This document shows positions 17,052 through 36,149 of a stretch of 64,000 bases of DNA, piece after piece (position 1 is the first letter of the stretch; each line of letters begins with the position of its first letter). The notes beneath the pieces are model-generated. The model made no database searches and was not told the origin of the DNA. It saw only the letters and a list, made by a program, of their open reading frames with translations. The position numbers and the translations under genes are program-made. Origin of the DNA: Oopsacas minuta (lineage: Eukaryota > Animalia > Porifera). The stretch is taken from NCBI GenBank assembly GCA_024704765.1, contig JAKMXF010000088.1, forward strand, positions 801,029 to 865,028, read 5' to 3'.

Positions 17052-18568
17052 TTAGTTAAGTAGTCGTGATCCCTCGTCACTATATGTTAGAGAGAAAGGA
17101 TGACTCACAGCTAGTATGTGCTTATCAGCTGTGTGATAATACAGCTGGTATAGCCCCCCGTCAGGGTGTCTAGGGAGGGTCTTGGACTTAATGATGAATG
17201 AGTAGGTGTTGTCTGACTTAGGGTCTGCACTCTTAGCCCTCAGGGGAGACCAAGTGTAACAGAGGTAGTCAGATGACGTCATGCATCCAAACCTAGTAGA
17301 ATACAGTAGGCTATAAGAACATACCGAATATAAGAACCGGTATAATAATACATACCTGTGTAACCCTATCCAGTCCCATGATGAGAATAATGGGGGCTTA
17401 GCTATAGTAGGTATCCTCTCATGCATATTGTGCAGTAGCTCTATCTTAACAGGTAAATCTGAGGTGACAGGCCAGCTGACGTCTGGTAATACAAACTCTA
17501 AAGGTGGTGAGTACTCCAGCCAATCAGAATATATATCAAAGTATGCATATACTACCTTATGGTCCGAGCAGTCCGGGAGGTCTAGACAGCTGTACTCTAC
17601 AGGGTCTACTCTCACGGGTATCTTCGGTCCGTTAGGGTAGGAGGGAGTAGGCCTGTCACTTGTCATGAAGAGGATTCTGTCACACCAGGCAGGGGTCCGT
17701 TGCTTAGAATTATTATAGTTATTAGTTGAATAAGGAACTAGTTTATAAGAAGGAGGGAATAATATTTCAGCCTCGTTAAAACGAGGGATCTGATCGGTTA
17801 ATATTTGCATCCTCAGCTGATCACACTGTAACAGTTTCTTAGTCTCTTTATTAGCCATTAGTTCTATTGCTTCCTGGAATGTTATGATCTCTAATCTGTA
17901 GTTTAGATCTCCGTACAATATCGAGTAGTTAGACAAATTGAACCATGGATATGATGTGAGTATCTCAAATATTTCTTCGTTACGTCTTTTAATGTTTGAT
18001 TCTACCGAGCACAAGTGAGCACACACACAGCTAACTGTCACAGATCCTAGCTGGAATGTCGTACATACCGCTCCCTTGTTCCCCACCCACCCGGAGTACC
18101 CAGTACGTATCGTATCGGACCCCATCTCCTTGTAGAAGGGGACCAGAGAGCTCCTGACGTATACAACCTATAAAACAGCTGATTAGTACAGCAGGGATAT
18201 TATGATATGATTCTTACCTGTATTATGCCTAGGAGATAGCTGTTATGAACCTGTATCAGATCCTCTCCGTTGAAAGCCTCCTGTAGCTGTCGTAGTATAG
18301 GATCTTCTATAAGGGACCATGGACTGCCTGGCTTTATAAAGTTCTCCTGTAAACCGAACACAAGCACGTCTATACCTACGGAATGTGGTAATATGAAACG
18401 TATCAGAATTAACGTTAATTCTGTTTATAGCTTACCTTCATTCAGTACTTTACTACGAATATGTGTAATATGTGAGTATAGAGGAGTACTGTTCGCAGAA
18501 TTCCATGTGAATACAGCTAGCTGTAGCTTAGTGAAGGTGTGTGGATGAGGTGGTGATCTTGTAGCCAT
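17052..18568 (-). CDS. INPP5K: Inositol polyphosphate 5-phosphatase with C-terminal SKICH-like domain (INPP5K/J-like)
   Basis: ATG at 18568 gives MATRSPP..LAVFTWNS. Catalytic motifs YGDLNYR and RTPAWCDRIL. SKICH-like SSWDWIGL..DYLCYTW. Confidence 0.85.
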
Positions 18569-19415: not shown

Positions 19416-21197
19416 ATGCAGCTGTTAGAAATACAGCGATTATTGTTACTGTTGTTGTTATCAGGATTTGTGACGTCATCTTCACAACAATGTAACACTC
19501 CTATCCTAAGAGATATTATAGACGGGGGTTCTGGAGAAGGAGACTTCATCAACAGTCTAGGATCCAATAGAGTGGTACCAGTTCTCAACCAATCAGAAGC
19601 TTTGGAGATAAGAGTCAGTGGGTTTAATTTTCCAATATTCAGACTAAACACAAACTATGACATTAATGCTATAGATATACAGTTTGGAAGTGAAGGAACA
19701 TCGTGTAGTGACAATGGTATAGCTATAGAAATGGAGACAATTACGATAGGGAATAGTGATCCTGTTGATTCTCCGGGTACAGCAGTACAAATAGGCTATG
19801 ATGATAATGATATAATGAACTTAATAGAGTTAGGAGATCCTAATGAAGGAAGAATAATAAGATTAAGATTTAATGCAGCTAGAGGGAGGTATATCAAATA
19901 TGGAGTAAGTTGATTAAATAGCTATGACGTAGTATTGCATTCTAATAAACAATTTATAGATAACAACAACAAATCCGCCAGGTAATGATAGCAATGTAGT
20001 TGAACTCTGTCTACGTACAGAATTCTACGGCTGTACAAGCGGAGGAATAACAGGATTAACATTCCTACAATACAACCTGATAGAACCTACAGTATATACA
20101 GACTCTATATACACAGGAATAACCTCTAAGGGATATATGTCAGGAGGAGAGGGACTACTGAATGATGGATCTATAGGTCAGTAACACATACAGATTATAT
20201 AACTGTATTAACTATTATGTTACAGGTACAAGCCCTATAGCAGACAATACTCAATGGATAGGATGGGATAATCCTGATATGGAAAATCCTGAAGTTCTGT
20301 TTCTGTTCAGTAGAGATGTGAATATTCGTAACATAAGTATATTCTACTGGGGAGAGACTAGTAGTGATATTACAGTACAGATTAGCAGTGTTAGAGGGAT
20401 AGAGACTGTGGTAGATGAGATTACACAAAATGAAGGATCTGTATACAGGAGGATATATGTATTTGATGGAGTTACTACTGGATTGATAAAACTAAACTTT
20501 ATAGGAATAAGCACAGTGCTGCTGACTGAAATAGAGATTATAGAACCTTTGGAGGGAATGAATCTATTGGGACCTACTCTAGATACCAGTAGGTTCATTG
20601 ATACTACTACAGCAGCAACAGGTTAGTTGTATATAATAATTTAGAGAGAAGTTATGTATTCATGGTATGTATACAGCAGGAATAACGACACCACAACCAC
20701 CAACACCAACAACACCAACAACACCAACAACATCAACAACAGGAATAATATCAACATCAAGTATAGCAACAACAAAATCAAATTCTAACAACCAGACTAT
20801 CTCTCAACCAGTAACAAAAATTCCAACAATAACAACAACAACAACACCAGTTAACACAAACTCATATAGTATATATATTATAATATTAGTAGTTATATGT
20901 ATACTGATATCTGTTGGTATAATACCTGTAGTTATAGTATGTGCATTCCTTTGCTATAAGGCTGGATACAAGGTAGGACAGAGAGACAAGAGTGATTATG
21001 TGGATATGCAACCAGATCCTAAACACGATTACGAACAAATCAAACCAGAAACAGAGCCTCAGTACCAGAATTTATCTAGTAGTGTAAGTTAAGAATTACA
21101 GTATAATCTATGTTCTGTATAATAATATACTTATATTAATTAGGTGAGAGAACATACAGATAACATACAGGACGGTAGTTATTATGTACTCAAGTAA
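19416..21197 (+). CDS. DDR-like receptor A: signal peptide, discoidin/DS-like ectodomain, Thr-rich stalk, TM, short ITAM-like tail; no kinase
   Basis: Spliced exons give [34 protein letters not shown] and [14 protein letters not shown] (DDR has CLRVELYGC, YGGLGQLADG, YVGW..VEMEFEFDR). TM IYIIILVVICILISVGIIPVVIVCAFLC. Tail YVDM-x7-YEQI-x7-YQNL. Stop at 21092 if unspliced or 21197 if spliced. Confidence 0.82.
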
Positions 21198-21654
21198 CAA
21201 ATACGATTATATCTGTAAATATGATTAACAGTGATGTAACGTGATATTTCTCTATAATTTGAGGTTTGAATTATGTGTAAAGCATTAGCTAATATTAAGT
21301 CATCTCTTAGAAGTAATTTTTCCAATTTTGGTTAGAATATACAGAGAGTAGTCCCTGGTTTGTTAAGGTATAAATCTAGCAGTACTCAGGAGTAATTTGC
21401 TATATTTCTATAATAGTTATATACTCTATAGACACTGTCATATACGTGTCATAAACAGAGGTTAGCGGGGGTGTTATAGCCATGAATCCATCTACTAAAA
21501 GATTATAGTCAGAATATTAATATCTCTCCTGTAAGGATAATAGTGTTAAATGGCTGCTTGAAATCTTATCTTCTGTCTGTAATATATGCAGAGTAGTGTA
21601 TAAGATATTGAATAGAATAACAAATATATTAATATTTATATCTAGCGATTAGTT

Positions 21655-24600
21655 ATGCAGCTGTTTGGAATAGAAATACTGTTGTTGTTAACATTGGCTG
21701 TGACGTCATCTTCACAACAATGTAACACTCCTATCCTAAGAGATATTATAGACGGGGGTTCTGGAGAAGGAGACTTCATCAACAGTCTAGGATCCAATAG
21801 AGTGGTACCAGTTCTCAACCAATCAGAAGCTTTGGAGATAAGAGTCAATGGGTTTAATTTTCCAATATTCAGACTAAACACAAACTATGACATTAATGCT
21901 ATAGATATACAGTTTGGAAGTGAAGGAACATCGTGTAGTGACAATGGTATAGCTATAGAAATGGAGACAATTACGATAGGGAATAGTGATCCTGTTGATT
22001 CTCCGGGTACAGCAGTACAAATAGGCTATGATGATAATGATATAATGAACTTAATAGAGTTAGGAGATCCTAATGAAGGAAGAATAATAAGATTAAGATT
22101 TAATGCAGCTAGAGGGAGGTATATCAAATATGGAGTAAGTTGATTAAATAGCTATGACGTAGTATTGCATTCTAATAAACAATTTATAGATAACAACAAC
22201 AAATCCGCCAGGTAATGATAGCAATGTAGTTGAACTCTGTCTACGTACAGAATTCTACGGCTGTACAAGCGGAGGAATAACAGGATTAACATTCCTACAA
22301 TACAACCTGATAGAACCTACAGTATATACAGACTCTATATACACAGGAATAACCTCTAAGGGATATATGTCAGGAGGAGAGGGACTACTGAATGATGGAT
22401 CTATAGGTCAGTAACACATACAGATTATATAACTGTATTAACTATTATGTTACAGGTACAAGCCCTATAGCAGACAATACTCAATGGATAGGATGGGATA
22501 ATCCTGATATGGAAAATCCTGAAGTTCTGTTTCTGTTCAGTAGAGATGTGAATATTCGTAACATAAGTATATTCTACTGGGGAGAGACTAGTAGTGATAT
22601 TACAGTACAGATTAGCAGTGTTAGAGGGATAGAGACTGTGGTAGATGAGATTACACAAAATGAAGGATCTGTATACAGGAGGATATATGTATTTGATGGA
22701 ATTACTACTGGATTGATAAAACTAAACTTTATAGGAATAAGCACAGTGCTGCTGACTGAAATAGAGATTATAGAACCTTTGGAGGGAATGAATCTATTGG
22801 GACCTACTCTAGATACCAGTAGGTTCATTGATACTACTACAGCAGCAACAGGTTAGTTGTATATAATAATTTAGAGAGAAGTTATGTATTCATGGTATGT
22901 ATACAGCAGGAATAACGACACCACAACCACCAACACCAACAACACCAACAACACTAACAACAGGAATAATATCAACATCAAGTATAGCAACAACAAAATC
23001 AAATTCTAACAACCAGACTATCTCTCAACCAGTAACAACAATTCCAACAATAACAACAACAACAATGCCTCCAGGATCTAGCTCTATAATAATAGGAGTA
23101 GTGATAGCATTAGTACTAATCGTATTTCTGATACTACTACTGGTAGTATTAATAGTAGTGTTTCTACTAGTCAGGAGGAGAAGGAATAACAGAGAGAAGG
23201 AGGGATATGTACCCACTAAGAAGAACTCTGGGTCAGCTGTCCGGCAGAACAGTAAGAGCAATGAGATGGGATTATATGAACCTATAGCTAAAGAGAATAT
23301 CAGTGAGCCTTACTATGAAGATCCTGATAAAGTAGTGAAGACTAGAGAAGAGAAAGGTTACTCTAACCTTATAGAGGAGGATATCAACACCTCTACATCT
23401 AAGAATAACGGAGCTGTTAGTACGGCTAATCAGTGGTACGAGGGAGGTGATAATTATGATATATACGCTAAACCCGAGGTAAGCATTATCGGATATAAGC
23501 ACCATCCTCTATACACACGATTCTCATGTATTCCTGTATATAGGATGTGGCAATCTACGCAAAAATAGACAAGCAGAAGTCCGTTAAGAAGCATCCGGAT
23601 AAGATATACGAAGAGCCTCAATATGATTTATCTATTGTACAGGATATAGATCCTGTTCCTTATAGAGATTCATTTGATTCCATCAGCAGCTTCCTGCCCC
23701 CCTCTAGCATATACGAGGCTCCTGCTCAGCTGTTAGAGGAAGAGGGACCCAGACACTTCTCAGCTGGTGACGTCAGAGAGGAGAGCTTCCTTGGCAACGG
23801 ACAGTTCGGTGAAGTTATGCTAGCTACTCTCCTTACAGTATCACCTCGGGAAATGGGGTTAGGACCCTCTGATAAGAAGGGAGTGAAAGTAGCGATCAAG
23901 AAATTAATGTCAGATCCATCTCCTCAGACGAAACAGGATTTCGGTAAGGAAATAAAGTTCATGGCTCGACTGAATCATCCTAATGTAGTCCGACTGCTGG
24001 GGGTTAGTCTGGAAACTCCTAGCCAATCATTCCTAGTAATGGAATACGTAGAGAACACAGATATGGCAAAGTTTCTGAAGGAATGTATATACGTGGATAC
24101 TAAGGGTAGTAACCTTAGAGGCAGACAGGTATGTGTACAATAATTATCTAGAGAGTTATGTGTAGTGACGTCATTATACTGTAGGTTAACCAGGACTGTA
24201 TGGTATACATGGGTCAGCAGATAGCCTCAGGAATGGAGTATCTATCTAATAGGAATTACATACACAGAGATCTGTCAGCTAGGAATTGTCTGGTGGGAAG
24301 TAACTATACTGTTAAGGTGTCAGACTTTGGAATGAGTCAGAATTTGTATTCTAGCGAATACTTCAAGATTACTGGTAAAGCTACACTACCCATAAGGTAA
24401 GTGGATCAGCTGATTATTCCTACTGTAGATAATACATGTGCTGTTAGATGGATGGCTAATGAGACGTTCTACGGACGATTCACTGTAAAATCTGATGTCT
24501 ATGCATTCGGAGTAACTCTATGGGAAATAATGGGTAAGGGAGAGACAAGGCCTTATGACGAGATGACTGACCAGGAGTTGATACGTGACGTAATCGGTAA

Positions 24601-24769
24601 CAAGACAAATAGAGTAAAGCTACAGAGACCTACTTTCGCTAGCCACAGCATATGGACAATAATATCTGCTTGTCTGGTGGTGGAGCCTTCCTTCAGGCCA
24701 AGTTTTATTGATCTGACTCAGCAACTGAGAAGAGAGACTAATTTCTCTATCGAGGAGGTTGCAATCTGA
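21655..24769 (+). CDS. DDR: DDR-like receptor tyrosine kinase B (full length)
   Basis: Ectodomain near-identical to [32 protein letters not shown] followed by RRRR. Kinase motifs [48 protein letters not shown] and [14 protein letters not shown]. Confidence 0.92.
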
Positions 24770-24960
24770 TAGAGGATGTATCTGTTTGTGTGAACTTTTT
24801 AACTTTAAAGTTTTGAGTTGTTTATTAGTGTAATTGTTTGTATATTAAATTGTGTAAATAGCATTATTAATATTACCATAATGCAAACAAAAATGTAAAT
24901 AACAACAACAAATAAAATAAGATACAGAAAAGCAAATAAAATATAACTAAGGATAAATAT

Positions 24961-26893
24961 ATGAAAGCATTCTTATTGTCTATAATGGTTGCTATGTGTA
25001 TAGCAGAGGAGTGCACTACTCCTCTATTTCGTGACGTAATATCACCGGATGCATCAAAGACTCGCTTTACACTAGATAACATTGGAGATATAGGATTTGT
25101 AACAGGACTACCTGTGATTAACAGTACTCACCCGTTAGTTATACGTATACGAGAGTTTACTACAGCTATATTGCTGCTTGCTGGGAGAGATAACTACTCT
25201 CCTCATTACTGGATAACAGCTGTAGATCTACAGCAGGGAGCTGCTGGGGTTAACTGTGATAGTAGTGGAGTAATAGAGGAAATGAGTTTAGAGTTTAAAG
25301 AGGCTTATGGGTACACAGCTCTGGACACACCCTTTAGAGAGGGGATAGACGCTACGAACAGTAATCCTACTCTTAACCTCAAGAAGATAGGGGGTTACTC
25401 AGGGGGGAGAGTAGTTAGACTCAGATTCCAACCCGTGGGAATAGACGGAATACGAATTAAGGTAACTTATAACTTATCCATGGTTCTAATAATATAATAA
25501 TATGTCTGCAGGTTCTGAGTATCGACCCACTGACTAGCAGTATAACTACAGAAGTATGTCTGAGAATAGAGGTGTACGGATGTGAGAAGACTAGTAACAG
25601 TCCTCCTGCAATATACAGCAGTCCCTTGTACCAATATAACTTGATAGAACCATCAGCTAACTCATATACAGATCCAACTTATACAGGAATAAGGTCAGGA
25701 GGATATCTGTCAGGGGGAGAGGGGATATTAACTGATGACGTAATAGGTATGCTGTATTAAATACCTGTGTGTATATATGGTTACTATGGTGTGTTAGGTA
25801 GGAATGCAGAGGATTATCCAAGGGAATGGCTGGGGTGGCAGAGAGAATATAGCAGTGAGATAGACGTGTTGTTTCTGTTTAGGAAAACACAACAAATAAA
25901 CAGAATTAATATATACTATTGGGAAGATAGCACAGCTGATATAGGAACAGCTGAGTACAGAGATCAAGACAATAATATTATTAATTTCGATAACACAAAC
26001 AAGTCAACAATAACAAATCATATAAGACTACTGAGTTGTTACAGAGATACGGAAACGTTAGTTAGTTATGTAAAACTGATGATATCCTATGCTACGGACA
26101 AGAATACAGTGATAATCACAGAAGTACAAATTGTGCGAGAGAGAGATGGATACTCTAGCAACGTAATTACAGGAAGGAATGTGATAGAGCTGAATTACAC
26201 ACAAACAACCGTATCCAATTATAACACAACAAAATCACCAAATAGGACAACAGAGATTGCAACAATACCAAAGAATACTACCATATTTATGTCAACAAAT
26301 AGAACAACAAATAGAACAACAAATAGGACAACAAATACAACAACAAATAGGACAACAAATACAACAACAAATAGGACAACAAATACAACAAGTAAGACAA
26401 CAACAACAATATTTAACACTTCATATTCTACTGATATAACCACCTCCATTACGTCATCACATACTACAGCTAGTCCATCTCCTACACAACTCAGTAATCT
26501 TATATTAGTTACAGCTATATCCAGCTGTTTGGTACTCTCTGTATGTACTAATGGTATTTTACTGGTACTGCTAGGGGTATGTTGCTGGAGGTATTTGAGT
26601 AGGAGAGGGTCCCTGATCGTACAGGGGAGAGAGTACATACCTGAGGACGAGGGTACCTACCTACCTATGAGCTCATTGGAGCTACCCAGCTATCTTAATA
26701 TACTAGACACAGATAAACAACAACAAACACCTGACACACCGGATAACCACTACTACTCAAGGCTAGATGTAAGTTCTGTACATTCCTTATACAGTATGTG
26801 GTTGCTAGGGATATTATCTATTTATTCATGTAGGCTTTCAAGGAGAAAGATAGTCCTGGAGATTTCAGGAAATATTACCAATTCAGGAGCTAG
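24961..26893 (+). CDS. DDR-like receptor C: ectodomain, N-glycan sequon stalk, TM, Tyr-motif tail; no kinase
   Basis: Signal peptide; [10 protein letters not shown]; EWLGW..EIDVLFLFRK; (NRTT/NTTT)n stalk; TM; YLPM-x7-YLNI; last exon AFKEKDSPGDFRKYYQFRS* ending at 26893. Confidence 0.8.
26290..26400 (+). repeat. Coding 12/24-bp tandem repeat encoding NRTT/NTTT
   Basis: aataggacaacaaatacaacaaca units inside DDR-C. Confidence 0.85.
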
Positions 26894-27244
26894 TCAGCTG
26901 ATTGTATTTTACGTTAATTATGCAATAACCATAATATTATGTGCTATAAAGGCTCTACAAATACCTGAAGCTTTATGTAATCAATATTGCGAAATAATCA
27001 ATAAATATACAATAAATATTAAGTAATATTATAGCAATCAGCAATTATAAATATCAAAATAATAATTATGGAGAATAATTATGGAGAATAATCCCAGAGA
27101 CCAGTAGCTCCACCTATGGGGTGGCATATGTAGACCTGGCTCGTGTATCTCTCTGTGTATATATAAGAGTATTCATGATATACATACGTAGTATAGAGTT
27201 AATTTATGCATCATAACTAATAAGTAAATTTGCATTAATTAGAT

Positions 27245-28711
27245 ATGAAAATGAACATTATATGCGTGTTGATATTCTTGGTGATGAGCATAGCAACCAG
27301 CAGAGCTCAGGAATGCAACACTCCGCTATTAAGAAACGAGGTGAGTGCAGACAGCGGTAGGACGAATACCTTGTTGAGTGGCCTAGGAGACAGCAGCGGT
27401 TTTGTAACAGGATTACCCCTGTTGGACAGCGTGGACCCTTTGACAATCAGGACAACTGGTGATATATTCACAGCCCCGCATTTTATAATAATTCCTAAAG
27501 ACAATTTCTCTCCTCACTACTGGATTACTGCAGTAGAGATACAGCAAGGACCTGCAGGAGTATACTGCACTAGTTCAGCTGTTATAACGGATATTGTGTT
27601 TGAAGTTAAGGAAGCTACTGGCTACACAGCTGTAAGTACTTCCTTTAATGCAGGGATACAAGCAAGGAATAGCGCACCGTATTATAACTGGCAGAGGTTT
27701 GGAGCAAATAACGGGGATGGACAGACCCTGAGATTCAACTTTAATCCAATCGGAGGAGACGGATTGAGATTTGAAGTGAGTTATTTATAATACATATGTG
27801 ACATTCCATATTAATTAACCTGTTGTTAGGTTCTGAGTATCGACCCACTGACTAGCAGTATAACTACGGAAGTATGTCTGAGAATAGAGGTGTACGGATG
27901 TGAGAAGACTAGTAACAGTCCTCCTGCAATATATAGCAGTCCCTTGTACCAATATAACCTGATAGAACCATCAGCTGACTCACATACAGATCCTACTTAC
28001 ACAGGAATAAGGTCAGGAGGATATCTGTCAGGGGGAGAGGGGATATTAACTGATGGGACTGTTGGTAAGTAATTGTAATCATGAGTTGTATAACTATTCT
28101 ATTAACTATCCTATCTACAGGAGGAGATACAGGTAATGCACCGACAGAATGGGTAGGTTGGAATAAATCGAGTACTCCTCAGATAGAAGTATTAATGCTG
28201 CTAATTAATCCGCATCAATACAAGCGTATAAACGTGTTATACTGGCTAGACAGTGCTAACGGTATAGGAGCACCTGCTGACATAGTGTTACTGGATCATA
28301 AAGACATTACACTAGACTTTACACCGGAAGACATCAGTATTAGCGCTAATGTAAAATCCAAAAGCTTTATCCGAACAAACACAGTGCTCACTAGCTATGT
28401 GAAGATACTACTAGAGTATGAAACTGGTGTAAATACTATCTTATTGACTGAGATAGAGATTGTAACAGAGGAGGGGGTTAACGTGCTTACAGGTCTTAAT
28501 GCTAGTATTATTACTTCACCTACTCGACCTCCTACTACGACAACACCTATACTGACAACAACAACAACAAATACTCCTACAACACCTGTAACCTCAACCA
28601 CTACACAAACAACAACAACAGTATCGCCAACTACAACTTCAAGCTCTACTAACACGCCTGCTGTAACAACACCAACACCATCAACATCAACATCAACATC
28701 AACATCAACAT

Positions 28712-28755
<44 letters not shown>

Positions 28756-30823
28756 CCTACAATCGCTACTACAATGACAGATACAACCATATTTAGCCAA
28801 ACTACTAATGAATCAATAGCTAGTACATTTACTAGTGACGTCACAGGATCAGCACCATCCGATGGAGGAATAAAACAAGAGTTAATAATAGGACTAATAT
28901 TCGTGATAATAATAATAATAATAATCGTCATAATAGTTATCATACTGGTGTCAGTATTTTACTACATGAAGAGCAAGAGCAAGGGACTAGGAGATCTCAA
29001 TTGTACCAGCACAGGAGGATTGTTTAAGAAGGATGTAGAGAGAGGTAGTGGAGGAATAAAGAGTAAATTCCAGAAATATAACTTTATAAAAGCACGGAGG
29101 ACAGAGTACGAGCCTGTTCCTGAAAAGTTAGACATATCACCACCATTCCATAAGTTCGAACTTACAGAAGAGATGTCCTCTGCTGATAAAGATAGCTTCA
29201 CTGACGCTAATGAAGATCTCAACATATACGCACCTGTATCCGTTAGTTAATTAATTACTTATCATAGCAGATAATATTTTCGTTATTTCTATAGGAAATA
29301 AGTGGCATATATGCTACTGTGAATAAAGGGAAGAAGGATAAGATATACGAAGAACCTCTATTCGACCTCTCCCTCCCCTCAACCCCCCTGGACGGCGACC
29401 AGTCAGAGGGACATGGGCTACAACCCCTGAGTAGCATTTACGAGGTGCCGGATCTCCTGTCTAAGGAGGAGGGACCTATCACTCTCACATGGAAGGACAT
29501 AGAAGAGGTAATATTAACGCGAGTGATTATTAATTATAAAGTAATTTGATAGATTAAAAGTCCAAGTAATCTTACAATAAGTATTAGGCGGGCATACGCA
29601 TGCACGAGACAATTACAGAGTTCATTAAAGGCAGACTTAAGTAATTTGAGAGTATCTTTAAAGTTATGCACCTGGTGTTATATTAAATTTTAATAGCCTA
29701 ATTAGGAATATGTAATTATTCAGTTTCAATAATAGATAATAACTTGTGACAAATATATTGCTTGTATACACAAATAATAATTAATAATAAGAATAACCTT
29801 AGTAGAATTTGATACATGTGGGGTGTACTCTTGTAGAGAGATAAACTTGGCAACGGACAGTTCGGAGAGGTATGTCTGGCATCACTCATCAATTACTCAG
29901 CCAAAGAGCTAGGGTTAGGAGCATCGGAGAAGAAAGGAGTAGAGATAGCGGTCAAGAAACTGCCCGCTAATTCTACCCAGCAAAGCAAGGACAACTTCAG
30001 TAACGAGATAAAATTCATGGCTCGATTGAACCATCCTAACGTTATAAAGCTGATAGGTGTGTGTCTTAATGATTTAGCACTAGGAAGGTGTATAGCTATG
30101 GAGTACATGATTAACGGAGACCTGGCTCAGTTCCTGAAAGAATCTGACTATGTAGACAGCATAGGAGCTAATCTAAGAATACAAGAGGTATGCTACTCTA
30201 TTTGTTGTATAGTGTAGTGACATCATTATACTGTAGGTTAACCAAGACTGTATGGTATACATGGGTCAGCAGATAGCCTCAGGAATGGAGTATCTATCTA
30301 ATAGGAATTACATACACAGAGATCTGTCAGCTAGGAATTGTCTGGTGGGAAGTAACTATACTGTTAAGGTAGCAGACTTTGGAATGAGTCAGAATTTGTA
30401 TTCTGGCGAATACTTTAAGATTACTGGCAGAGCTACACTACCCATAAGGTAACTATACCATCGTGTTAATGGCATGTGATAATTATCATTGTATTGTATA
30501 GGTGGATGTCTAATGAAAGTTTCTACGGTAAGTTCACTATAAAGACAGATGTGTGGGCGTTTGGAGTTACACTTTGGGAAATATTCACTAAGTGCGAGAA
30601 GAAGCCTTATGAAGGTATGTCCGACCACGAGCTGATTCAAGACGTACTAGCTAATAAGCTGAATAGGATCAAATTAGATAGGCCTGACTATGCGTCGGAG
30701 GAGGGATGGGAACTAATCACCCGCTGTACTCAGATGGACCCAGACAACAGACCAACATTTGATGTTATTAGAAGGGAGTTGGAGGATATGTGCAAGTTCC
30801 AGATCGAAGAGATCAAAATTTGA
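27245..30823 (+). CDS. DDR: DDR-like receptor tyrosine kinase D (full length)
   Basis: Signal peptide; [10 protein letters not shown]; EWVGW; long Thr/Ser stalk; [32 protein letters not shown]. Kinase motifs [33 protein letters not shown] and [15 protein letters not shown]. Confidence 0.92.
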
Positions 30824-31206
30824 ATTCTATTTTAATCTTACAATGTAAATATATGTAGTATAGTGTATATCTTGTAAATCATACTATTCCCTACATGATA
30901 TGATATACAGAAGGTTATAGAAATGAAAGTATAATATTAATTATAAAACTACTGACAAAACAGTCGCATGTAATTCATGGAAACAGGATTTGCCATGAAG
31001 GAGAGAATTTAATATTATCATATTGGAAGGATAGCTATAATAAAACGTGTAAGGAAGTTAGATTAAAAATAGCAACGTAAGAATATTCGTTATAAATTTA
31101 CCTGAATACTGAGAGGAGATTGTGTGTGTTGATTGAGATAACACTGGTATATGTTGGAGGCATAAGGATGAGGGTATAAATAGTCAAGTTTGTAAGTTAT
31201 GAGCAA

Positions 31207-33290
31207 ATGATGCGAATAATATGTTTATTACTGATCTCTGTTGTATCTGTGTACACACAGAACAACATCAGAATACTTAGAGACGTTATTGCTCCTGATG
31301 ACGTAAGGACTGCTAACCTTTTTAGTATGCTAGGCATTAACGCTAGTCAGTCAGAGCTAGAAGGTATACCTTATATTAACAGCGATATACAATGGTTGGT
31401 ACATCTTGAAGAAACTGGGATAGGTTTTAATCCTAGATTCGTGTTGGAACTGTTTAATACTGAAGAATCTCCACATTACCAAATAATAGCGATAGAAATT
31501 ATGAGTAGCATTTATGACGGTGCGTGCGGACTGGAGGAAGACGATCTAGCTATGATATCTAGGCTAGAAGTACAGATAGGATATGATGACGTATTCAGGT
31601 GAATAATATATAAACATAACATATTATGAATTGAGTAATTGAATTAGTTTATGTATTTTAGTGACGTCAATACTACGAGCTACCTAACAGAAGGATTCTT
31701 GGATATGGAGCTCCTGGGTCTGACTGATACAAACAATTATATAAGATTTAGGATACCACCGATGAATGGAGATGAAATCAGATTTGTAGTAAGCTTTCAT
31801 TAATATTTTGCATAACAATACTGTGTTATCGTTGCTATGTAGCTAGAGGATACTAATCCCAGTTTCCAGGCAGGCTCCACCAACCTCTGTTTGCAATTTG
31901 AATTTATAGGCCTAGATTTGAATGCCGGGACTGAGCTACCCCCGGGACCTCTCAGTCTCTTGCAATACAATATGCAGGAGCCTACGTTCTCATACACGAT
32001 GATAGATCCGTATGATGACGTCATGTATAACGGAGCTAGAGAGATGCTGTATACTGGAGCAAGAGGCAAACTGACTGACGGAATAATCGGTAAGTACACT
32101 GGAATATTTTTAGATAAGATAATTTAAATCTTGTACAATCAGGCACAGATCCAGATGTAGTGGAAGAATGGGTAGGATTTGATGATTTGGCTGGCCTGCA
32201 GTTATTCTTCGATGAGATTTATTCTGTGAAGGAAATCAGAGTATACTACTGGAGCGATGAAGTGAACGGAGCAGCAGAGCCCATGGGAGATGCTAGAAAC
32301 AGGGATGGAAATAGGATAATGAGGTTTCAATTCACTACGTATGTGTACGATGCTAGTGTACCACAATTAATGGTTTATGCTGGAGAAGCGGATAGCCCGG
32401 TAGATTTGGATTATGTTCTGCTGCGGTTACGAACACCTGAAGCTTCTGTGTTAATCTCAGAAGTATCAGTTCTACGGGAGGATGCTGCAGGTAGGCTAGT
32501 TGATGTTTCTACTGGATTTACACAGAGTCGAATCTCTTTTGTACCCGAAATATCAGCTGATTCGGCAACTACGATGACTAGTACTAACACAAGGTTACCC
32601 CCTAGTCCACAAGTTACTCTTATATCCTCTGCGGTAATATATGGAGCTATAGGGATTGTCAGCTGTTTGTTCTTAGTGATTGCATCAATGTGCATAATAT
32701 TCGTAATTATATTTTGTGTAATTAGAACACGCGTTAAGAAGGAAATTATCCGTATACAGGTACAGCACTCTCCGGTTAGAAGAAAATCCTCTAGCAGATA
32801 CGAAGGGTTGACACTGAATGGAGAGGGTAACTACGCTGAGGTTGAGAATGTGTACGCACAGGTAGACAGGACTCTACCCCTCCCTCCCATACCAGGAGAG
32901 GAGACCAAATCCAAACAACTGGTAAAGGATGACTCTTATATTGAGATGGAAAGATCGCCATCTTACAAAACTAATGCAAACGGACTGAAGATAGACACCC
33001 GTCAGACTAGCAAGCTAGTCACTATGAGAACTCTATCAGAGGACGATTACGCACCAGTAACACCCCCCTCTGCCTCTATCGATGCGAAAGGACCCCCTAA
33101 GAGAGTGCTCTCCGACCCATACGTAGTAGTTACCCCTCCTCCAGCTTCTAATGAATTCAAACTAACTGGAATAGAGGAGAACCAGGAACCTGTGGATGCT
33201 GACAGGCAGAATCCTTCCCTAGCGCATGGAATTCCATCAATATCGAATGAGTATACACCCATGGGAACTAAAGATTCTCCAGTTATGTAA
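31207..33290 (+). CDS. DDR-like receptor E: ectodomain, TM, long Tyr-motif tail; no kinase
   Basis: Signal peptide; LCLQFEFIG; YNGAREMLYTGARGKLTDGIIG; EEWVGF; TM; tail SRYEGL-x7-YAEV, YAQV, YIEM, YAPV, YVVV, YTPM. The ORF stops at 33290 and the next gene is convergent. Confidence 0.78.
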
Positions 33291-33467: not shown

Positions 33468-34685
33468 TTACAACAGAGCATTAATAAGCTCAGTGAATGA
33501 CGTCACATACCATGGAGATAAGTCCTTAACCTTCTGTCTCATCACGTTACCTCCAAAGCCTATGAACACGTCAGCTGGGGGGAACGCCTCGTAGTCAGTG
33601 TACCCGTCTCCTATCATGGTTAGAGTATTGTATTGCCCTTCTGTCTTTATGCGTTGTATTACTAGTCCCTTACCGCCTGTCTGACTGGTAGGCTGATTAA
33701 AATCGAAGGTATTATAATCACCTAAATGATTAAGTCATTATTATCCGTAGTACTAATGAGTATTGTTAGTATTCATGGTATGGTAGCTAACCTGTATCAT
33801 CGAATAGTATAGAGTTTGCAAACACTCGATCAGCAGGGATTGACAGCTGATCAGCCGCGGGACCTATTATCTCTCTGAAGCCTCCAGACACTAGATACAC
33901 GTCTGTACCTCTGGAATGCAGACAGGCGACCAGCTCACGGATCCCCGGGGTGAGGCGGACTGGGTGAATAGAGATGAACTCCTCTAGCGATTTCTTGGAA
34001 GGACGAACCATCTGGAGACGAGTGCTCAAACTCTCTCTGAACCCAATTGTACCAACCATACCTAAATAGAATATTTTAGAACAAAGCGTGTGGGCTTGCG
34101 ACTAAGATTACTATTGAGTGATAGCCACGTCATATTGTAACATTATATGTTATTTTATTAGTGAAATACTTCAAAGTCATATATGTTGTGTAGTAACTAA
34201 TGCGCAATACAGTGTATACCTCCCTTGCTGAAAGTGTCCAGCTTAGGTAGTAGATAAGAGAATATACATCATAGTAATATTACGTAAATACAATGAACTT
34301 TCTACATAAAAAACAAAAGAATTCACGATTAAATGCCTTATGACCTTCTCAGTTGCTAGGGTAAAGTACTTATTCCAGGGATAATACCCTAATTAAGGTT
34401 GTATATTACACAATAAATAAAGCTACAATTAATAGGTTTACTTGTGAGATTGCTTGCTAATATGTCGTCATTAGTATGCGTATTATAAAATAGAAATATA
34501 CCTTTCTTGGTCCACCTCTTGACTTTGTCCCCCACGCCACAGAAGTCTGCAAGCTCGTCCAGTCCCTCGTCCTGACAGACCGTAGAGTCCACGTCGAAGC
34601 AAACACAGTCCGATACCGCCCACAGCTGTCGGGCCTCTTTTTCGCTCATATTTTGTTTTGAATTTTCTGTCGGAGTGGTGGCCAT
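33468..34685 (-). CDS. PSPH: Phosphoserine phosphatase (HAD family), 3 exons
   Basis: VCFDVDSTV, LTPGIRELV, LVSGGF, MIGDGYTD, FIGFGGNV and WYVTSFTELINALL*. Confidence 0.95.
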
Positions 34686-34932: not shown

Positions 34933-36149
34933 TCATATTATCCCCCGGGATAACTTCTGGAGATGAGTCCCTGAACTGACGAGATAATACAATCCCTCGG
35001 TTCCTCAGAATATCAGATTTCTGTTCGTTAACTTCACGGAGGTAATGCCAGGCACTGGCTGTATCCTCTTCATCAATAATATATAACTAGAGGTTAATAT
35101 TGATATAAAGGTGTTAAAATATGATTAATCATAAATACCTGAGTACTGAAAGTTGATACCAACATAGGAATATATCCCGTAACAGAGCTCCAGTCTTCAT
35201 GGAAGAAATAAATCGGTTTTATATCAGTAGCAACAATCAATTGATTTGTATTAATTCTTTTGAATAAATCTTTTTGGAAACTAAATGAAAGATAAAACCA
35301 GAGATACTGCTTGCCTAGGGCTTCCTCCTCCTCTCCCGTTAGGGTACCGTCGTATAGCGCTAGCCACAGACTGGGAACATCTCCGTATTTGTTGTGATGT
35401 GTATGACAACTCTAGAGAAGAAGAGTAAATAAAAACAACAACAAATATATATATAATGCTTATACCTTGTATATGACTCTAGCAACGACAGAACATGTGA
35501 ACTCGCTGGGGGTTGGAGATAGAGATATTCTGCTGAGGGTCACAGGGAAGAATTCAAAATCCAAGAATTCTTTGATAAATAATTTTATTTTAATATTACC
35601 AGGCATAAAGTTCCATAAACTGGATATATCAAAACATTCTACTCGCGACGTCACGTGTGCTATAACCTCTGCTGGGGAGAGATGATGAGGATCAGAATTA
35701 TATTTGTCCTGTTGGTATACATCTTTAACTCTATAGCCCTTAATTACTAACAGTCTGCCCTCTTGCAGCCTGCTGTAGTTCCTTTTAATCACGGAGGATC
35801 CCCAGAAACTAACCCTAACCAAGTCAGAGGCATCCTTGACCCAAATGGCGAAGAAGCAAAAGTCAGAACTATTTCTCTTCTTGGTGAAGAATATCGGATG
35901 GAACTTCCGTGTTATAACACCTATTAGGAGGGCATCGGGCCGATAGGGCAGCGTAGTACCCAGCTGGGATCTGAGTATAGATATATTCTCCCGAGGAGAG
36001 GGACTGCTATTAATTAACTCAAAGCAAGTGATCGGGTCTGATACCGCCAGAGCGTCCGCACTTAATTTACTTTGCTGAGACATGAACTCATTCCAGGGCT
36101 CCAGGGGTCTAGGGGGAGGGGGGAAATGATTCTCGGTTTGGGTTGCCAT
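34933..36149 (-). CDS. OB-fold ssDNA-binding protein, RADX/RPA1-like, short form
   Basis: IWVKDASDLVRVSFWGSSVIKRNYSRLQEGRLLVIKGYRVKD fits an RPA1/RADX-type OB fold. A later exon reads SLWLALYDGT. One probable GC-AG donor near 35318. Downstream exons were read by eye. Confidence 0.55.

Follow-up and report, generated by a model that had tools for sequence, protein, structure and literature searches.

Alternating kinase-less and kinase-bearing discoidin domain receptor genes, with converted ectodomains, in an array of the glass sponge Oopsacas minuta

The window analyzed here is a 64-kb stretch of eukaryotic DNA from the glass sponge Oopsacas minuta (Hexactinellida), with a G+C content of about 38% and introns mostly of about 50 nt. 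Between positions 19416 and 33290 it carries five spliced genes, all on the forward (+) strand, that resemble discoidin domain receptors (DDRs). We refer to them as A to E, running from the ATG of A (19416) to the stop codon of E (33290); genes that encode a tyrosine kinase (K) alternate with genes that do not (-), and the locus reads A(-) B(K) C(-) D(K) E(-). Each predicted protein has a signal peptide, a discoidin (DS) domain of about 165 amino acids, a DS-like domain of about 180 amino acids, a stalk rich in Ser, Thr, and Pro, and a single transmembrane (TM) segment. All five gene models have canonical GT..AG introns and intact reading frames, and every intron but one is 49-81 nt long.

Gene A (19416-21197, +; exons at approximately 19416-19908, 19982-20176, 20226-20621, 20677-21083, and 21144-21197) encodes a protein of 520 amino acids with a Thr/Pro stalk, a TM segment at about 20877-20960, and a cytoplasmic tail of 59 residues; the small additional 3' exon in which it terminates (21144-21197) is not a kinase exon. 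Gene B (21655-24769, +; a 921-amino-acid model) has a TM segment at about 23098-23172, a cytosolic juxtamembrane region of 185 amino acids, and a DDR-type kinase (23793-24766). The kinase-less gene C (24961-26768, +) joins its DS and DS-like domains through an NRTT-repeat stalk to a TM segment at about 26523-26590 and a tail of about 60 residues carrying tyrosine motifs. It is uncertain where exactly C ends at its 3' side; ...HYYSRLD is followed, at 26769, by a perfect GTAAGT donor, and any terminal exon must fall before the ATG of D (27245); no kinase exon lies in between. Gene D (27245-30823, +; a 994-amino-acid model) follows its DS and DS-like domains with a long Thr-rich stalk, a TM segment at about 28885-28968, a juxtamembrane region of 166 amino acids, and a DDR-type kinase (29849-30820). 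Gene E (31207-33290, +; 637 amino acids) has the most divergent DS and DS-like domains, a TM segment at about 32661-32723, and a kinase-less tail of 188 residues. The TM segments of A, C, and E contain no K, R, D, or E residue.

Two peculiarities of these models may be recorded. The kinase N-lobe of D holds the one long intron of the array (329 nt, 29508-29836), where B has none. In the stalk of C, a 12-nt tandem repeat (26269-26412) encodes NRTT/NTTT units with many N-glycosylation sequons (16 NxS/T sites in C versus 2-4 in the other array genes), and this repeat is likely to be a site of length variation.

A tblastn search of the whole window with the kinase regions of B and D found two kinase loci only (B, 23754-24766, and D, 29478-30820) and, at E <= 1, no kinase pseudo-exon or remnant downstream of A, C, or E; the same kind of search recovered exactly five copies of the ectodomain. 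The alternating order is therefore real. Two of the genes have public models, KAI6658624 (LOD99_15422, 520 aa) for A and KAI6658628 (LOD99_15426, 637 aa) for E, both annotated as "hypothetical protein" and both free of a kinase. The locus tags between them leave room for exactly three genes, and A to E apparently correspond to LOD99_15422 to LOD99_15426. An initial annotation of this window had described five co-oriented genes alternating between kinase-less and kinase-bearing forms; the spliced models and the tblastn searches confirm that description together with its coordinates, and the kinase-free public models, with no kinase exon in the 64 kb besides those of B and D, confirm that A, C, and E lack a kinase.

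The kinases of B and D, which are 74% identical overall, resemble the DDRs most. The exon encoding the catalytic and activation-loop segment matches DDR2/DDR1 best (5.7e-26, 92.5 bits, versus 5e-21, 77 bits, for Trk/TrkB), as does the N-lobe; the C-lobe exon does not discriminate among families. The juxtamembrane lengths of B and D may be compared with the 142-170 amino acids of human DDRs (PMC4332414). Like DDR1 and DDR2, both sponge proteins combine DS and DS-like domains, a stalk of the glycosylated type, a single TM segment, a long juxtamembrane region, a close catalytic/activation-loop segment, and a short, tyrosine-free C-terminus. We conclude that B and D are predicted to be full DDR-type receptor tyrosine kinases (RTKs).

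The kinship of the ectodomains is less easily seen. Pfam searches with single exons gave no match for any ectodomain exon, phmmer searches of the PDB with the DS exon and the DS-like exon of D found nothing relevant, and a profile built from five sequences of the DS-like exon returned only noise from the PDB; the DDR homology becomes visible only with the full-length spliced protein, with an exon-2 profile, or by structure prediction. A protein homology search with residues 1-140 of D exon 3 gave no hit either, probably because D (about 995 aa) exceeds the length window of that search and its paralogues have too few 5-mers in common with it, and this carries no weight as evidence of absence. 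The exon-2 profile finds as its best PDB match the human DDR1 ectodomain (4ag4_A, E = 1.1e-5), with DDR2 DS domains next; the alignment crosses the DS/DS-like junction (from CLRVELYGC through DSTYDG...GGLGQLADGVV), and the motif that ends the DS domain, CLRxEΦYGC, aligns with both DDR1 and DDR2. The spliced A protein (P0001) matches the Pfam family PF21114, DDR1-2_DS-like (E = 5.8e-6, 26.6 bits). With the A ectodomain as modeled by AF2, 4ag4_A was again the top Foldseek match (E = 3.8e-5, among 350,542 chains), followed by two-discoidin proteins. The first domain (AF2 residues 2-172) has among its top 50 VIA-align matches nearly exclusively F5/8C, CBM32, or related discoidin folds (Z up to 9.5), the DS domain of DDR2 scoring Z 8.7 over 133 residues. 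With the second domain modeled alone, the DDR1 DS-like domain ranks 3-4 of 48,161 representative chains (Z 7.9, 122-124 residues), tied with CBM32 modules.

The DS domain of DDRs has a described pattern of two disulphides (PMC4332414). A to D have four DS cysteines at the expected positions, fitting both disulphides (N- to C-terminus and the Cys73-Cys177 type), and in the E-type genes of three species the first and last of these cysteines are jointly lost and the middle pair is retained. Ser, Thr, and Pro make up a fraction of 0.52-0.69 of the stalks of A to D. In a search of 1.84 billion representatives, the DS-like exon profile found 18 proteins, 16 of them sponge-like and two bacterial; the bacterial matches (P0013 and P0018) were rejected as relatives and are low-complexity artefacts.

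Some results count against a DDR assignment of the ectodomains. The PF21114 score of A lies 0.4 bit below the gathering cutoff (27), the Pfam model F5_F8_type_C misses the N-terminal domain in single exons and in the spliced protein alike, and the AF2 ectodomain models are of low confidence (mean pLDDT 61-63, with the strands of the A model at 70-80). Unlike those of DDR1 and DDR2, the sponge ectodomains are so divergent that F5_F8_type_C and single-sequence searches overlook them. Profile and predicted fold nevertheless indicate that the ectodomains of A to E are DDR-type, with DS and DS-like domains that are very divergent, and collagen, which DDRs bind through trench residues of the Trp52/Arg105/Glu113 type and which activates them, is a candidate ligand only. 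The annotation's view that these were DDR-type kinases and discoidin-type ectodomains has thus held up, the former through the best matches of the core exon and the N-lobe, the latter through the profile search, the near-threshold PF21114 match, and the predicted fold, with 4ag4_A on top by both sequence profile and Foldseek.

In place of a kinase, A, C, and E carry tails with regularly spaced tyrosines. The tail of A contains SDYVDM-x7-YEQI, QYQNL, and GSYYVLK, that of C GTYLPM-x7-YLNI and HYYSRLD, and that of E eight tyrosines in YEGL-x7-YAEV-x3-YAQV, DSYIEM, DDYAPVTPP, DPYVVVTPP, and NEYTPM, along with a PLPLPPIPG segment. Across species, A/C-type tails follow the pattern Y-x-[DP]-M-x7-Y-x-x-[ILV] with a YY motif near the C-terminus (for example SDYVDMQPDPKHDYEQI, NSYLDMKPAPQHDYETI, GTYLPMSSLELPSYLNI, GTYVPMKSVELRNYHIL, and GYYVPMAPVETKNYENV), and E-type tails share Yxx[FL]-x6-7-Yxx[ILMVA]-x3-Y[QA]x[VI], PLPLPPxPG, EDSYIEM, SEDDYxPVTPP, and SDxYVxVTPP. 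The ITAM (immunoreceptor tyrosine-based activation motif) has YxxL/I-x6-8-YxxL/I as its canonical consensus. All kinase-less tails have ITAM-like spacing; unlike the consensus, the first motif of A and C ends in Met and the second motif of E in Val. YxxM is a motif for the SH2 domains of p85 and YxN one for Grb2, and the 11-residue distance between tyrosines is found in ITAMs and in the p85 site of PDGFR as well. No dichotomy between ITAMs and their inhibitory counterparts (ITIMs) was recognized among the tails of the array.

The array recurs in at least two other sponge assemblies, from species that we assume to be hexactinellids. In species 3 (ENA assembly ERZ23487945, locus L005) all five genes are present and arranged as in O. 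minuta, and a second sample of that species (L006, ENA ERZ26869290) has an array 99.3% identical to that of L005. Directly upstream of A in O. minuta lies an inositol-polyphosphate-phosphatase-like gene (17055-18125, -; Exo_endo_phos2 and SKICH by Pfam), and an Exo_endo_phos2/SKICH gene stands upstream of the L005 array as well; this shared neighbor shows the two loci to be orthologous. Compared between O. minuta and species 3, ectodomains are 45-59% and kinases 75-81% identical. In species 2 (long-read ENA assembly ERZ20067936, contig ptg000022l, loci L003, L001, and L002) the array is expanded and reads, in order, A fragment, A(-), B(K), a chimeric gene, C(-), D(K), E(-), and E2(-). The chimeric gene (L001 4600-8520) joins a D-type ectodomain to a B-type kinase; its ectodomain is 94-99% identical to that of the species' own D, and its kinase, apparently intronless, is nearly identical to that of the species' own B.

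These comparisons indicate that the array is old, syntenically conserved, and stable in glass sponges, and that it is not species-specific. Because gene order and tail motifs are conserved across species, we accept A, C, and E, which the initial annotation had listed as genes, as predicted genes that are real, separate, intact, and conserved, not debris. Its description of the system as lineage-specific does not survive in the sense of being peculiar to O. minuta.

Several features of the surroundings differ or lie apart from the array. Downstream of E the window contains an exon of a HAD-type hydrolase (33790-34059, -; Pfam gives HAD only), which one might guess to be a phosphoserine phosphatase, and a gene for an OB-fold protein (35463-36149, -) with weak matches to DUF5088 and MEIOB-N; the downstream neighbor in L005 is a different one, a bZIP_Maf gene. 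In species 2 a lone kinase-less member (L008 9264-10993, ERZ20067936 contig ptg000091l), its ectodomain of the A/B class and its tail of the C type, sits off the array among NHL-repeat genes.

The closest relationship within the array joins a kinase-less gene to its kinase-bearing neighbor. Over 1,398 nt, A (19447-20844, +) is 98.6% identical to B (21677-23065, +), three introns included. The matching tract runs from just past the signal-peptide region to the stalk right before the TM segment, and its flanks are unrelated: the ectodomain of B is 99% identical to that of A, and the two genes have unlike signal peptides, TM segments, and tails. In a tree of DS domains, A pairs with B within O. 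minuta and again within species 3 (support 99/96); in a tree of kinases, the B type is split from the D type across three species (support 100/100), and the A-type tail is common to the A genes of the different species. The conflict between the two trees, together with the shared A tail, marks the identity of A and B as post-speciation homogenization and not as recent duplication, and the comparisons indicate that this identity is maintained by gene conversion. A haplotype or assembly duplicate was rejected as its source, since the two genes agree neither in their flanks nor in signal peptide, TM segment, or tail, as was a very recent duplication, since the kinase of B and the tail of A are orthologous across species.

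In species 3 the ectodomains of A and B share 82-94% of their amino acids. There the A gene (L005 2791-3258) has a B-type TM segment and about the first 20 juxtamembrane residues of the B type, in frame with an A-type tail, and the conversion tract thus reaches further 3' than that of O. minuta. Two shorter patches occur elsewhere in the O. minuta array. Exon 2 of C (25510-25737, +), which encodes the DS domain's end and the DS-like domain's start, is 97% identical to D 27828-28055, with adjoining exons at about 70-76%, and the catalytic/activation-loop exon of B (24160-24400, +) matches D 30212-30452 at 97% identity over a patch that takes in 25 nt of the preceding intron.

A further gene, L004 1357-3092 (ERZ26869290 contig ctg334436), fuses a D-type ectodomain to an A-type kinase-less tail. 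Its ectodomain is about 94% identical at the nucleotide level to that of the main array, and a deleted C-like gene and an exon-1 fragment of the A/B type lie on its flanks. This rearranged paralogous copy may have arisen by segmental duplication or may represent a divergent haplotype, or it may be a metagenome mis-assembly.

Classified by ectodomain, the genes fall into groups (AB, CD, and E) that are incongruent with those formed by their tails (A~C, B~D, and E), and the AB and CD ectodomain classes each comprise one kinase-less and one kinase-bearing gene. This arrangement fits a history in which an ancestral pair of one kinase-less and one kinase-bearing gene would have been duplicated, followed by exchange of ectodomains within each pair.

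By virtue of the conversion, A and B are predicted to have one ligand-binding surface in common, in O. minuta as well as in a second species. On this basis we favor, with about an even chance of its being correct, a reading of the locus as an ancient array of the DDR family whose kinase-less receptors would be of a docking type and have their ligand specificity in common with the kinase-bearing neighbors. The kinase-less members would act as docking or co-receptor subunits that bind the ligand class of the kinase-bearing neighbor, possibly a collagen-like matrix. Clustering driven by the ligand would lead to phosphorylation of their tail tyrosines, either by the neighboring DDR kinase within mixed oligomers or by cytosolic tyrosine kinases, and the phosphorylated motifs of A and C and the multi-tyrosine, proline-rich tail of E could then recruit effectors of the p85 type, the Grb2 type, or the tandem-SH2 type. 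A single ligand would in this way be read out through two kinds of signaling tail. The initial annotation, too, had proposed that kinase-less partners might recruit SH2 effectors or be substrates of the neighboring kinases.

Single-pass receptors of discoidin fold and without a kinase are known in the neuropilins, which work with VEGFR, and in DCBLD1/2; such proteins partner RTKs or serve as phosphotyrosine docking sites. A, C, and E resemble them in having a discoidin-fold ectodomain and no kinase. Unlike the array genes, neuropilins and DCBLD1/2 are not DDR paralogues, possess CUB, MAM, and LCCL domains, and are not known to be clustered with RTK partners or converted with them.

A number of observations pull the other way from a docking role with shared ligands. 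In species 2 the ectodomains of A and B are not homogenized (41-46% identity), and a D-type ectodomain is common to two kinase genes of different kinase type; conversion is thus not specific to pairs of a kinase-less and a kinase-bearing gene. The DS exons of C and D are only about 50% identical, compared with 75% between C and its counterpart C', so that the ectodomains of C and D sort by orthology, and for E there is no kinase-bearing counterpart; evidence for ligand sharing is accordingly confined to A and B.

Among the alternatives, we consider it unlikely that A, C, and E are independent receptors, which would signal through cytosolic Src- or Syk-type kinases as immunoreceptors or DCBLD2-type scaffolds do; in the same unlikely scheme they would have no functional tie to B and D, and the alternation would be a relic of an ancestral two-gene duplication. 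The ITAM-like spacing (YxxM/L-x7-YxxI/V) of all kinase-less tails would suit such receptors, as would the divergence of the C and D ectodomains and the solitary position of the L008 gene on another contig of species 2. What this scheme leaves unaccounted for is the retention of gene order over the divergence of three species, and the recurrence of homogenization between kinase-less and kinase genes in A/B of O. minuta, in A/B of species 3, and in the L004 gene with its D ectodomain and A tail.

A further proposal, which we entertain tentatively and think rather improbable, is a paired system built on an RTK, in which conversion would keep a kinase-less partner bearing ITAM-like or YxxM motifs ligand-matched to a DDR kinase, one cue thereby being turned into two outputs. 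Its models are the paired immune receptors of vertebrates (Siglec-5/14, Siglec-11/16, and CEACAM), which likewise are neighbors with near-identical, converted ectodomains and unrelated TM segments and tails (PMC4042635, PMC5701461, PMC2832619). They differ from the sponge genes in fold (Ig there, discoidin here), in the partner (an ITIM receptor there, an RTK here), and in the means of signaling, a DAP12-recruiting charged TM segment there and the kinase-less partner's own tyrosine motifs here. The initial annotation had proposed paired receptors for the whole array. For A and B this stands, insofar as conversion keeps their ectodomains near-identical above differing TM segments and tails, the signature by which paired receptors are defined; it does not extend to C and D, in which a single exon is homogenized, or to E, and the array has no charged-TM/ITIM scheme.

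We think it quite unlikely that the kinase-less genes are decoys or dominant negatives with silent tails, absorbing ligand or poisoning DDR dimers in the manner of truncated RTK isoforms. The kinase-less d and e isoforms of DDR1 are predicted to be inactive (PMC4332414), and A has the ectodomain of B, as a competitor would need. A pure decoy would have no need of the fixed-spacing tyrosine motifs that were kept while the ectodomains diverged to 45-52%, and the tail of A in species 3 remained in frame after conversion had replaced the TM segment. As in DDR1d/e, TrkB.T1, ErbB3, and EphB6/EphA10, a catalytically inactive member of an RTK family could here modulate or diversify the signaling of active relatives; unlike those splice forms and pseudokinases, the sponge genes lack the whole kinase and have conserved tail motifs of their own. 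That the sponge kinase-less forms are separate conserved genes also sets them apart from DDR1d/e, which are splice isoforms (PMC4332414).

A polymorphic immune or allorecognition locus, with activating and inhibitory members that sense self/non-self or microbes, appears very improbable. Consistent with such a role, the family is clustered and subject to gene conversion and domain shuffling, its tyrosine spacing is ITAM-like, and its ectodomains evolve much faster than its kinases, as the identities between O. minuta and species 3 given above attest. Polymorphism, which is extreme in the ectodomains of allorecognition loci, was compared between two haplotypes of species 3, a related species. 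No difference separates samples L005 and L006 in the stretch reaching from the C tail through the D juxtamembrane region, the whole D ectodomain included; in the E ectodomain they differ by 1.2-1.6% of nucleotides, with one to two altered amino acids per exon. Between species, the content and order of the genes are stable, and neither an ITIM/ITAM dichotomy nor a charged TM residue is seen. With haplotypes only 0-1.6% divergent and no charge in the kinase-less TM segments, the immune or allorecognition-like role suggested for the array by the initial annotation is not supported.

That A-B and C-D might each be one transcription unit, the upstream "genes" being alternative 5' cassettes or read-through products, would agree with the short intergenic gaps (458 nt for A-B, 219-476 nt for C-D) and is hardly credible, given that every unit has its own signal peptide, TM segment, and stop codon, that B and D already possess complete ectodomains, that other species have kept the tails of A, C, and E as coding sequence, and that the public annotation calls A and E as separate genes.

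The function of invertebrate DDRs has been stated to be unknown (PMC4332414). The O. minuta genome paper (PMC10280926) makes no mention of DDRs or RTKs, and in the literature on hexactinellid DDRs and on paired receptors, ITAM, or Syk in sponges we found no description of this locus.

DDRs are usually viewed as stand-alone kinases activated by collagen; the array described here adds separate kinase-less genes of the DDR family in an early-branching animal, genes that have been conserved over the whole divergence of the glass sponges sampled and that exchange ectodomains with their kinase-bearing neighbors. It offers a testable case of receptor/co-receptor pairs, or of paired receptors, arising from an RTK, and it supplies defined reagents (the ectodomains of A and B, peptides of the A, C, and E tails, and the kinases of B and D) with which the ligand and the signaling of sponge DDRs can be probed. 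Since the Pfam discoidin model and single-exon searches miss such receptors, RTK censuses of sponges that rely on domain searches may undercount them. If the array is indeed a paired system based on an RTK, the logic of paired receptors would have an independent origin far older than that of the vertebrate immune receptors, and the role of such a system in a syncytial animal might lie in tissue fusion, self-recognition, or the sensing of matrix.

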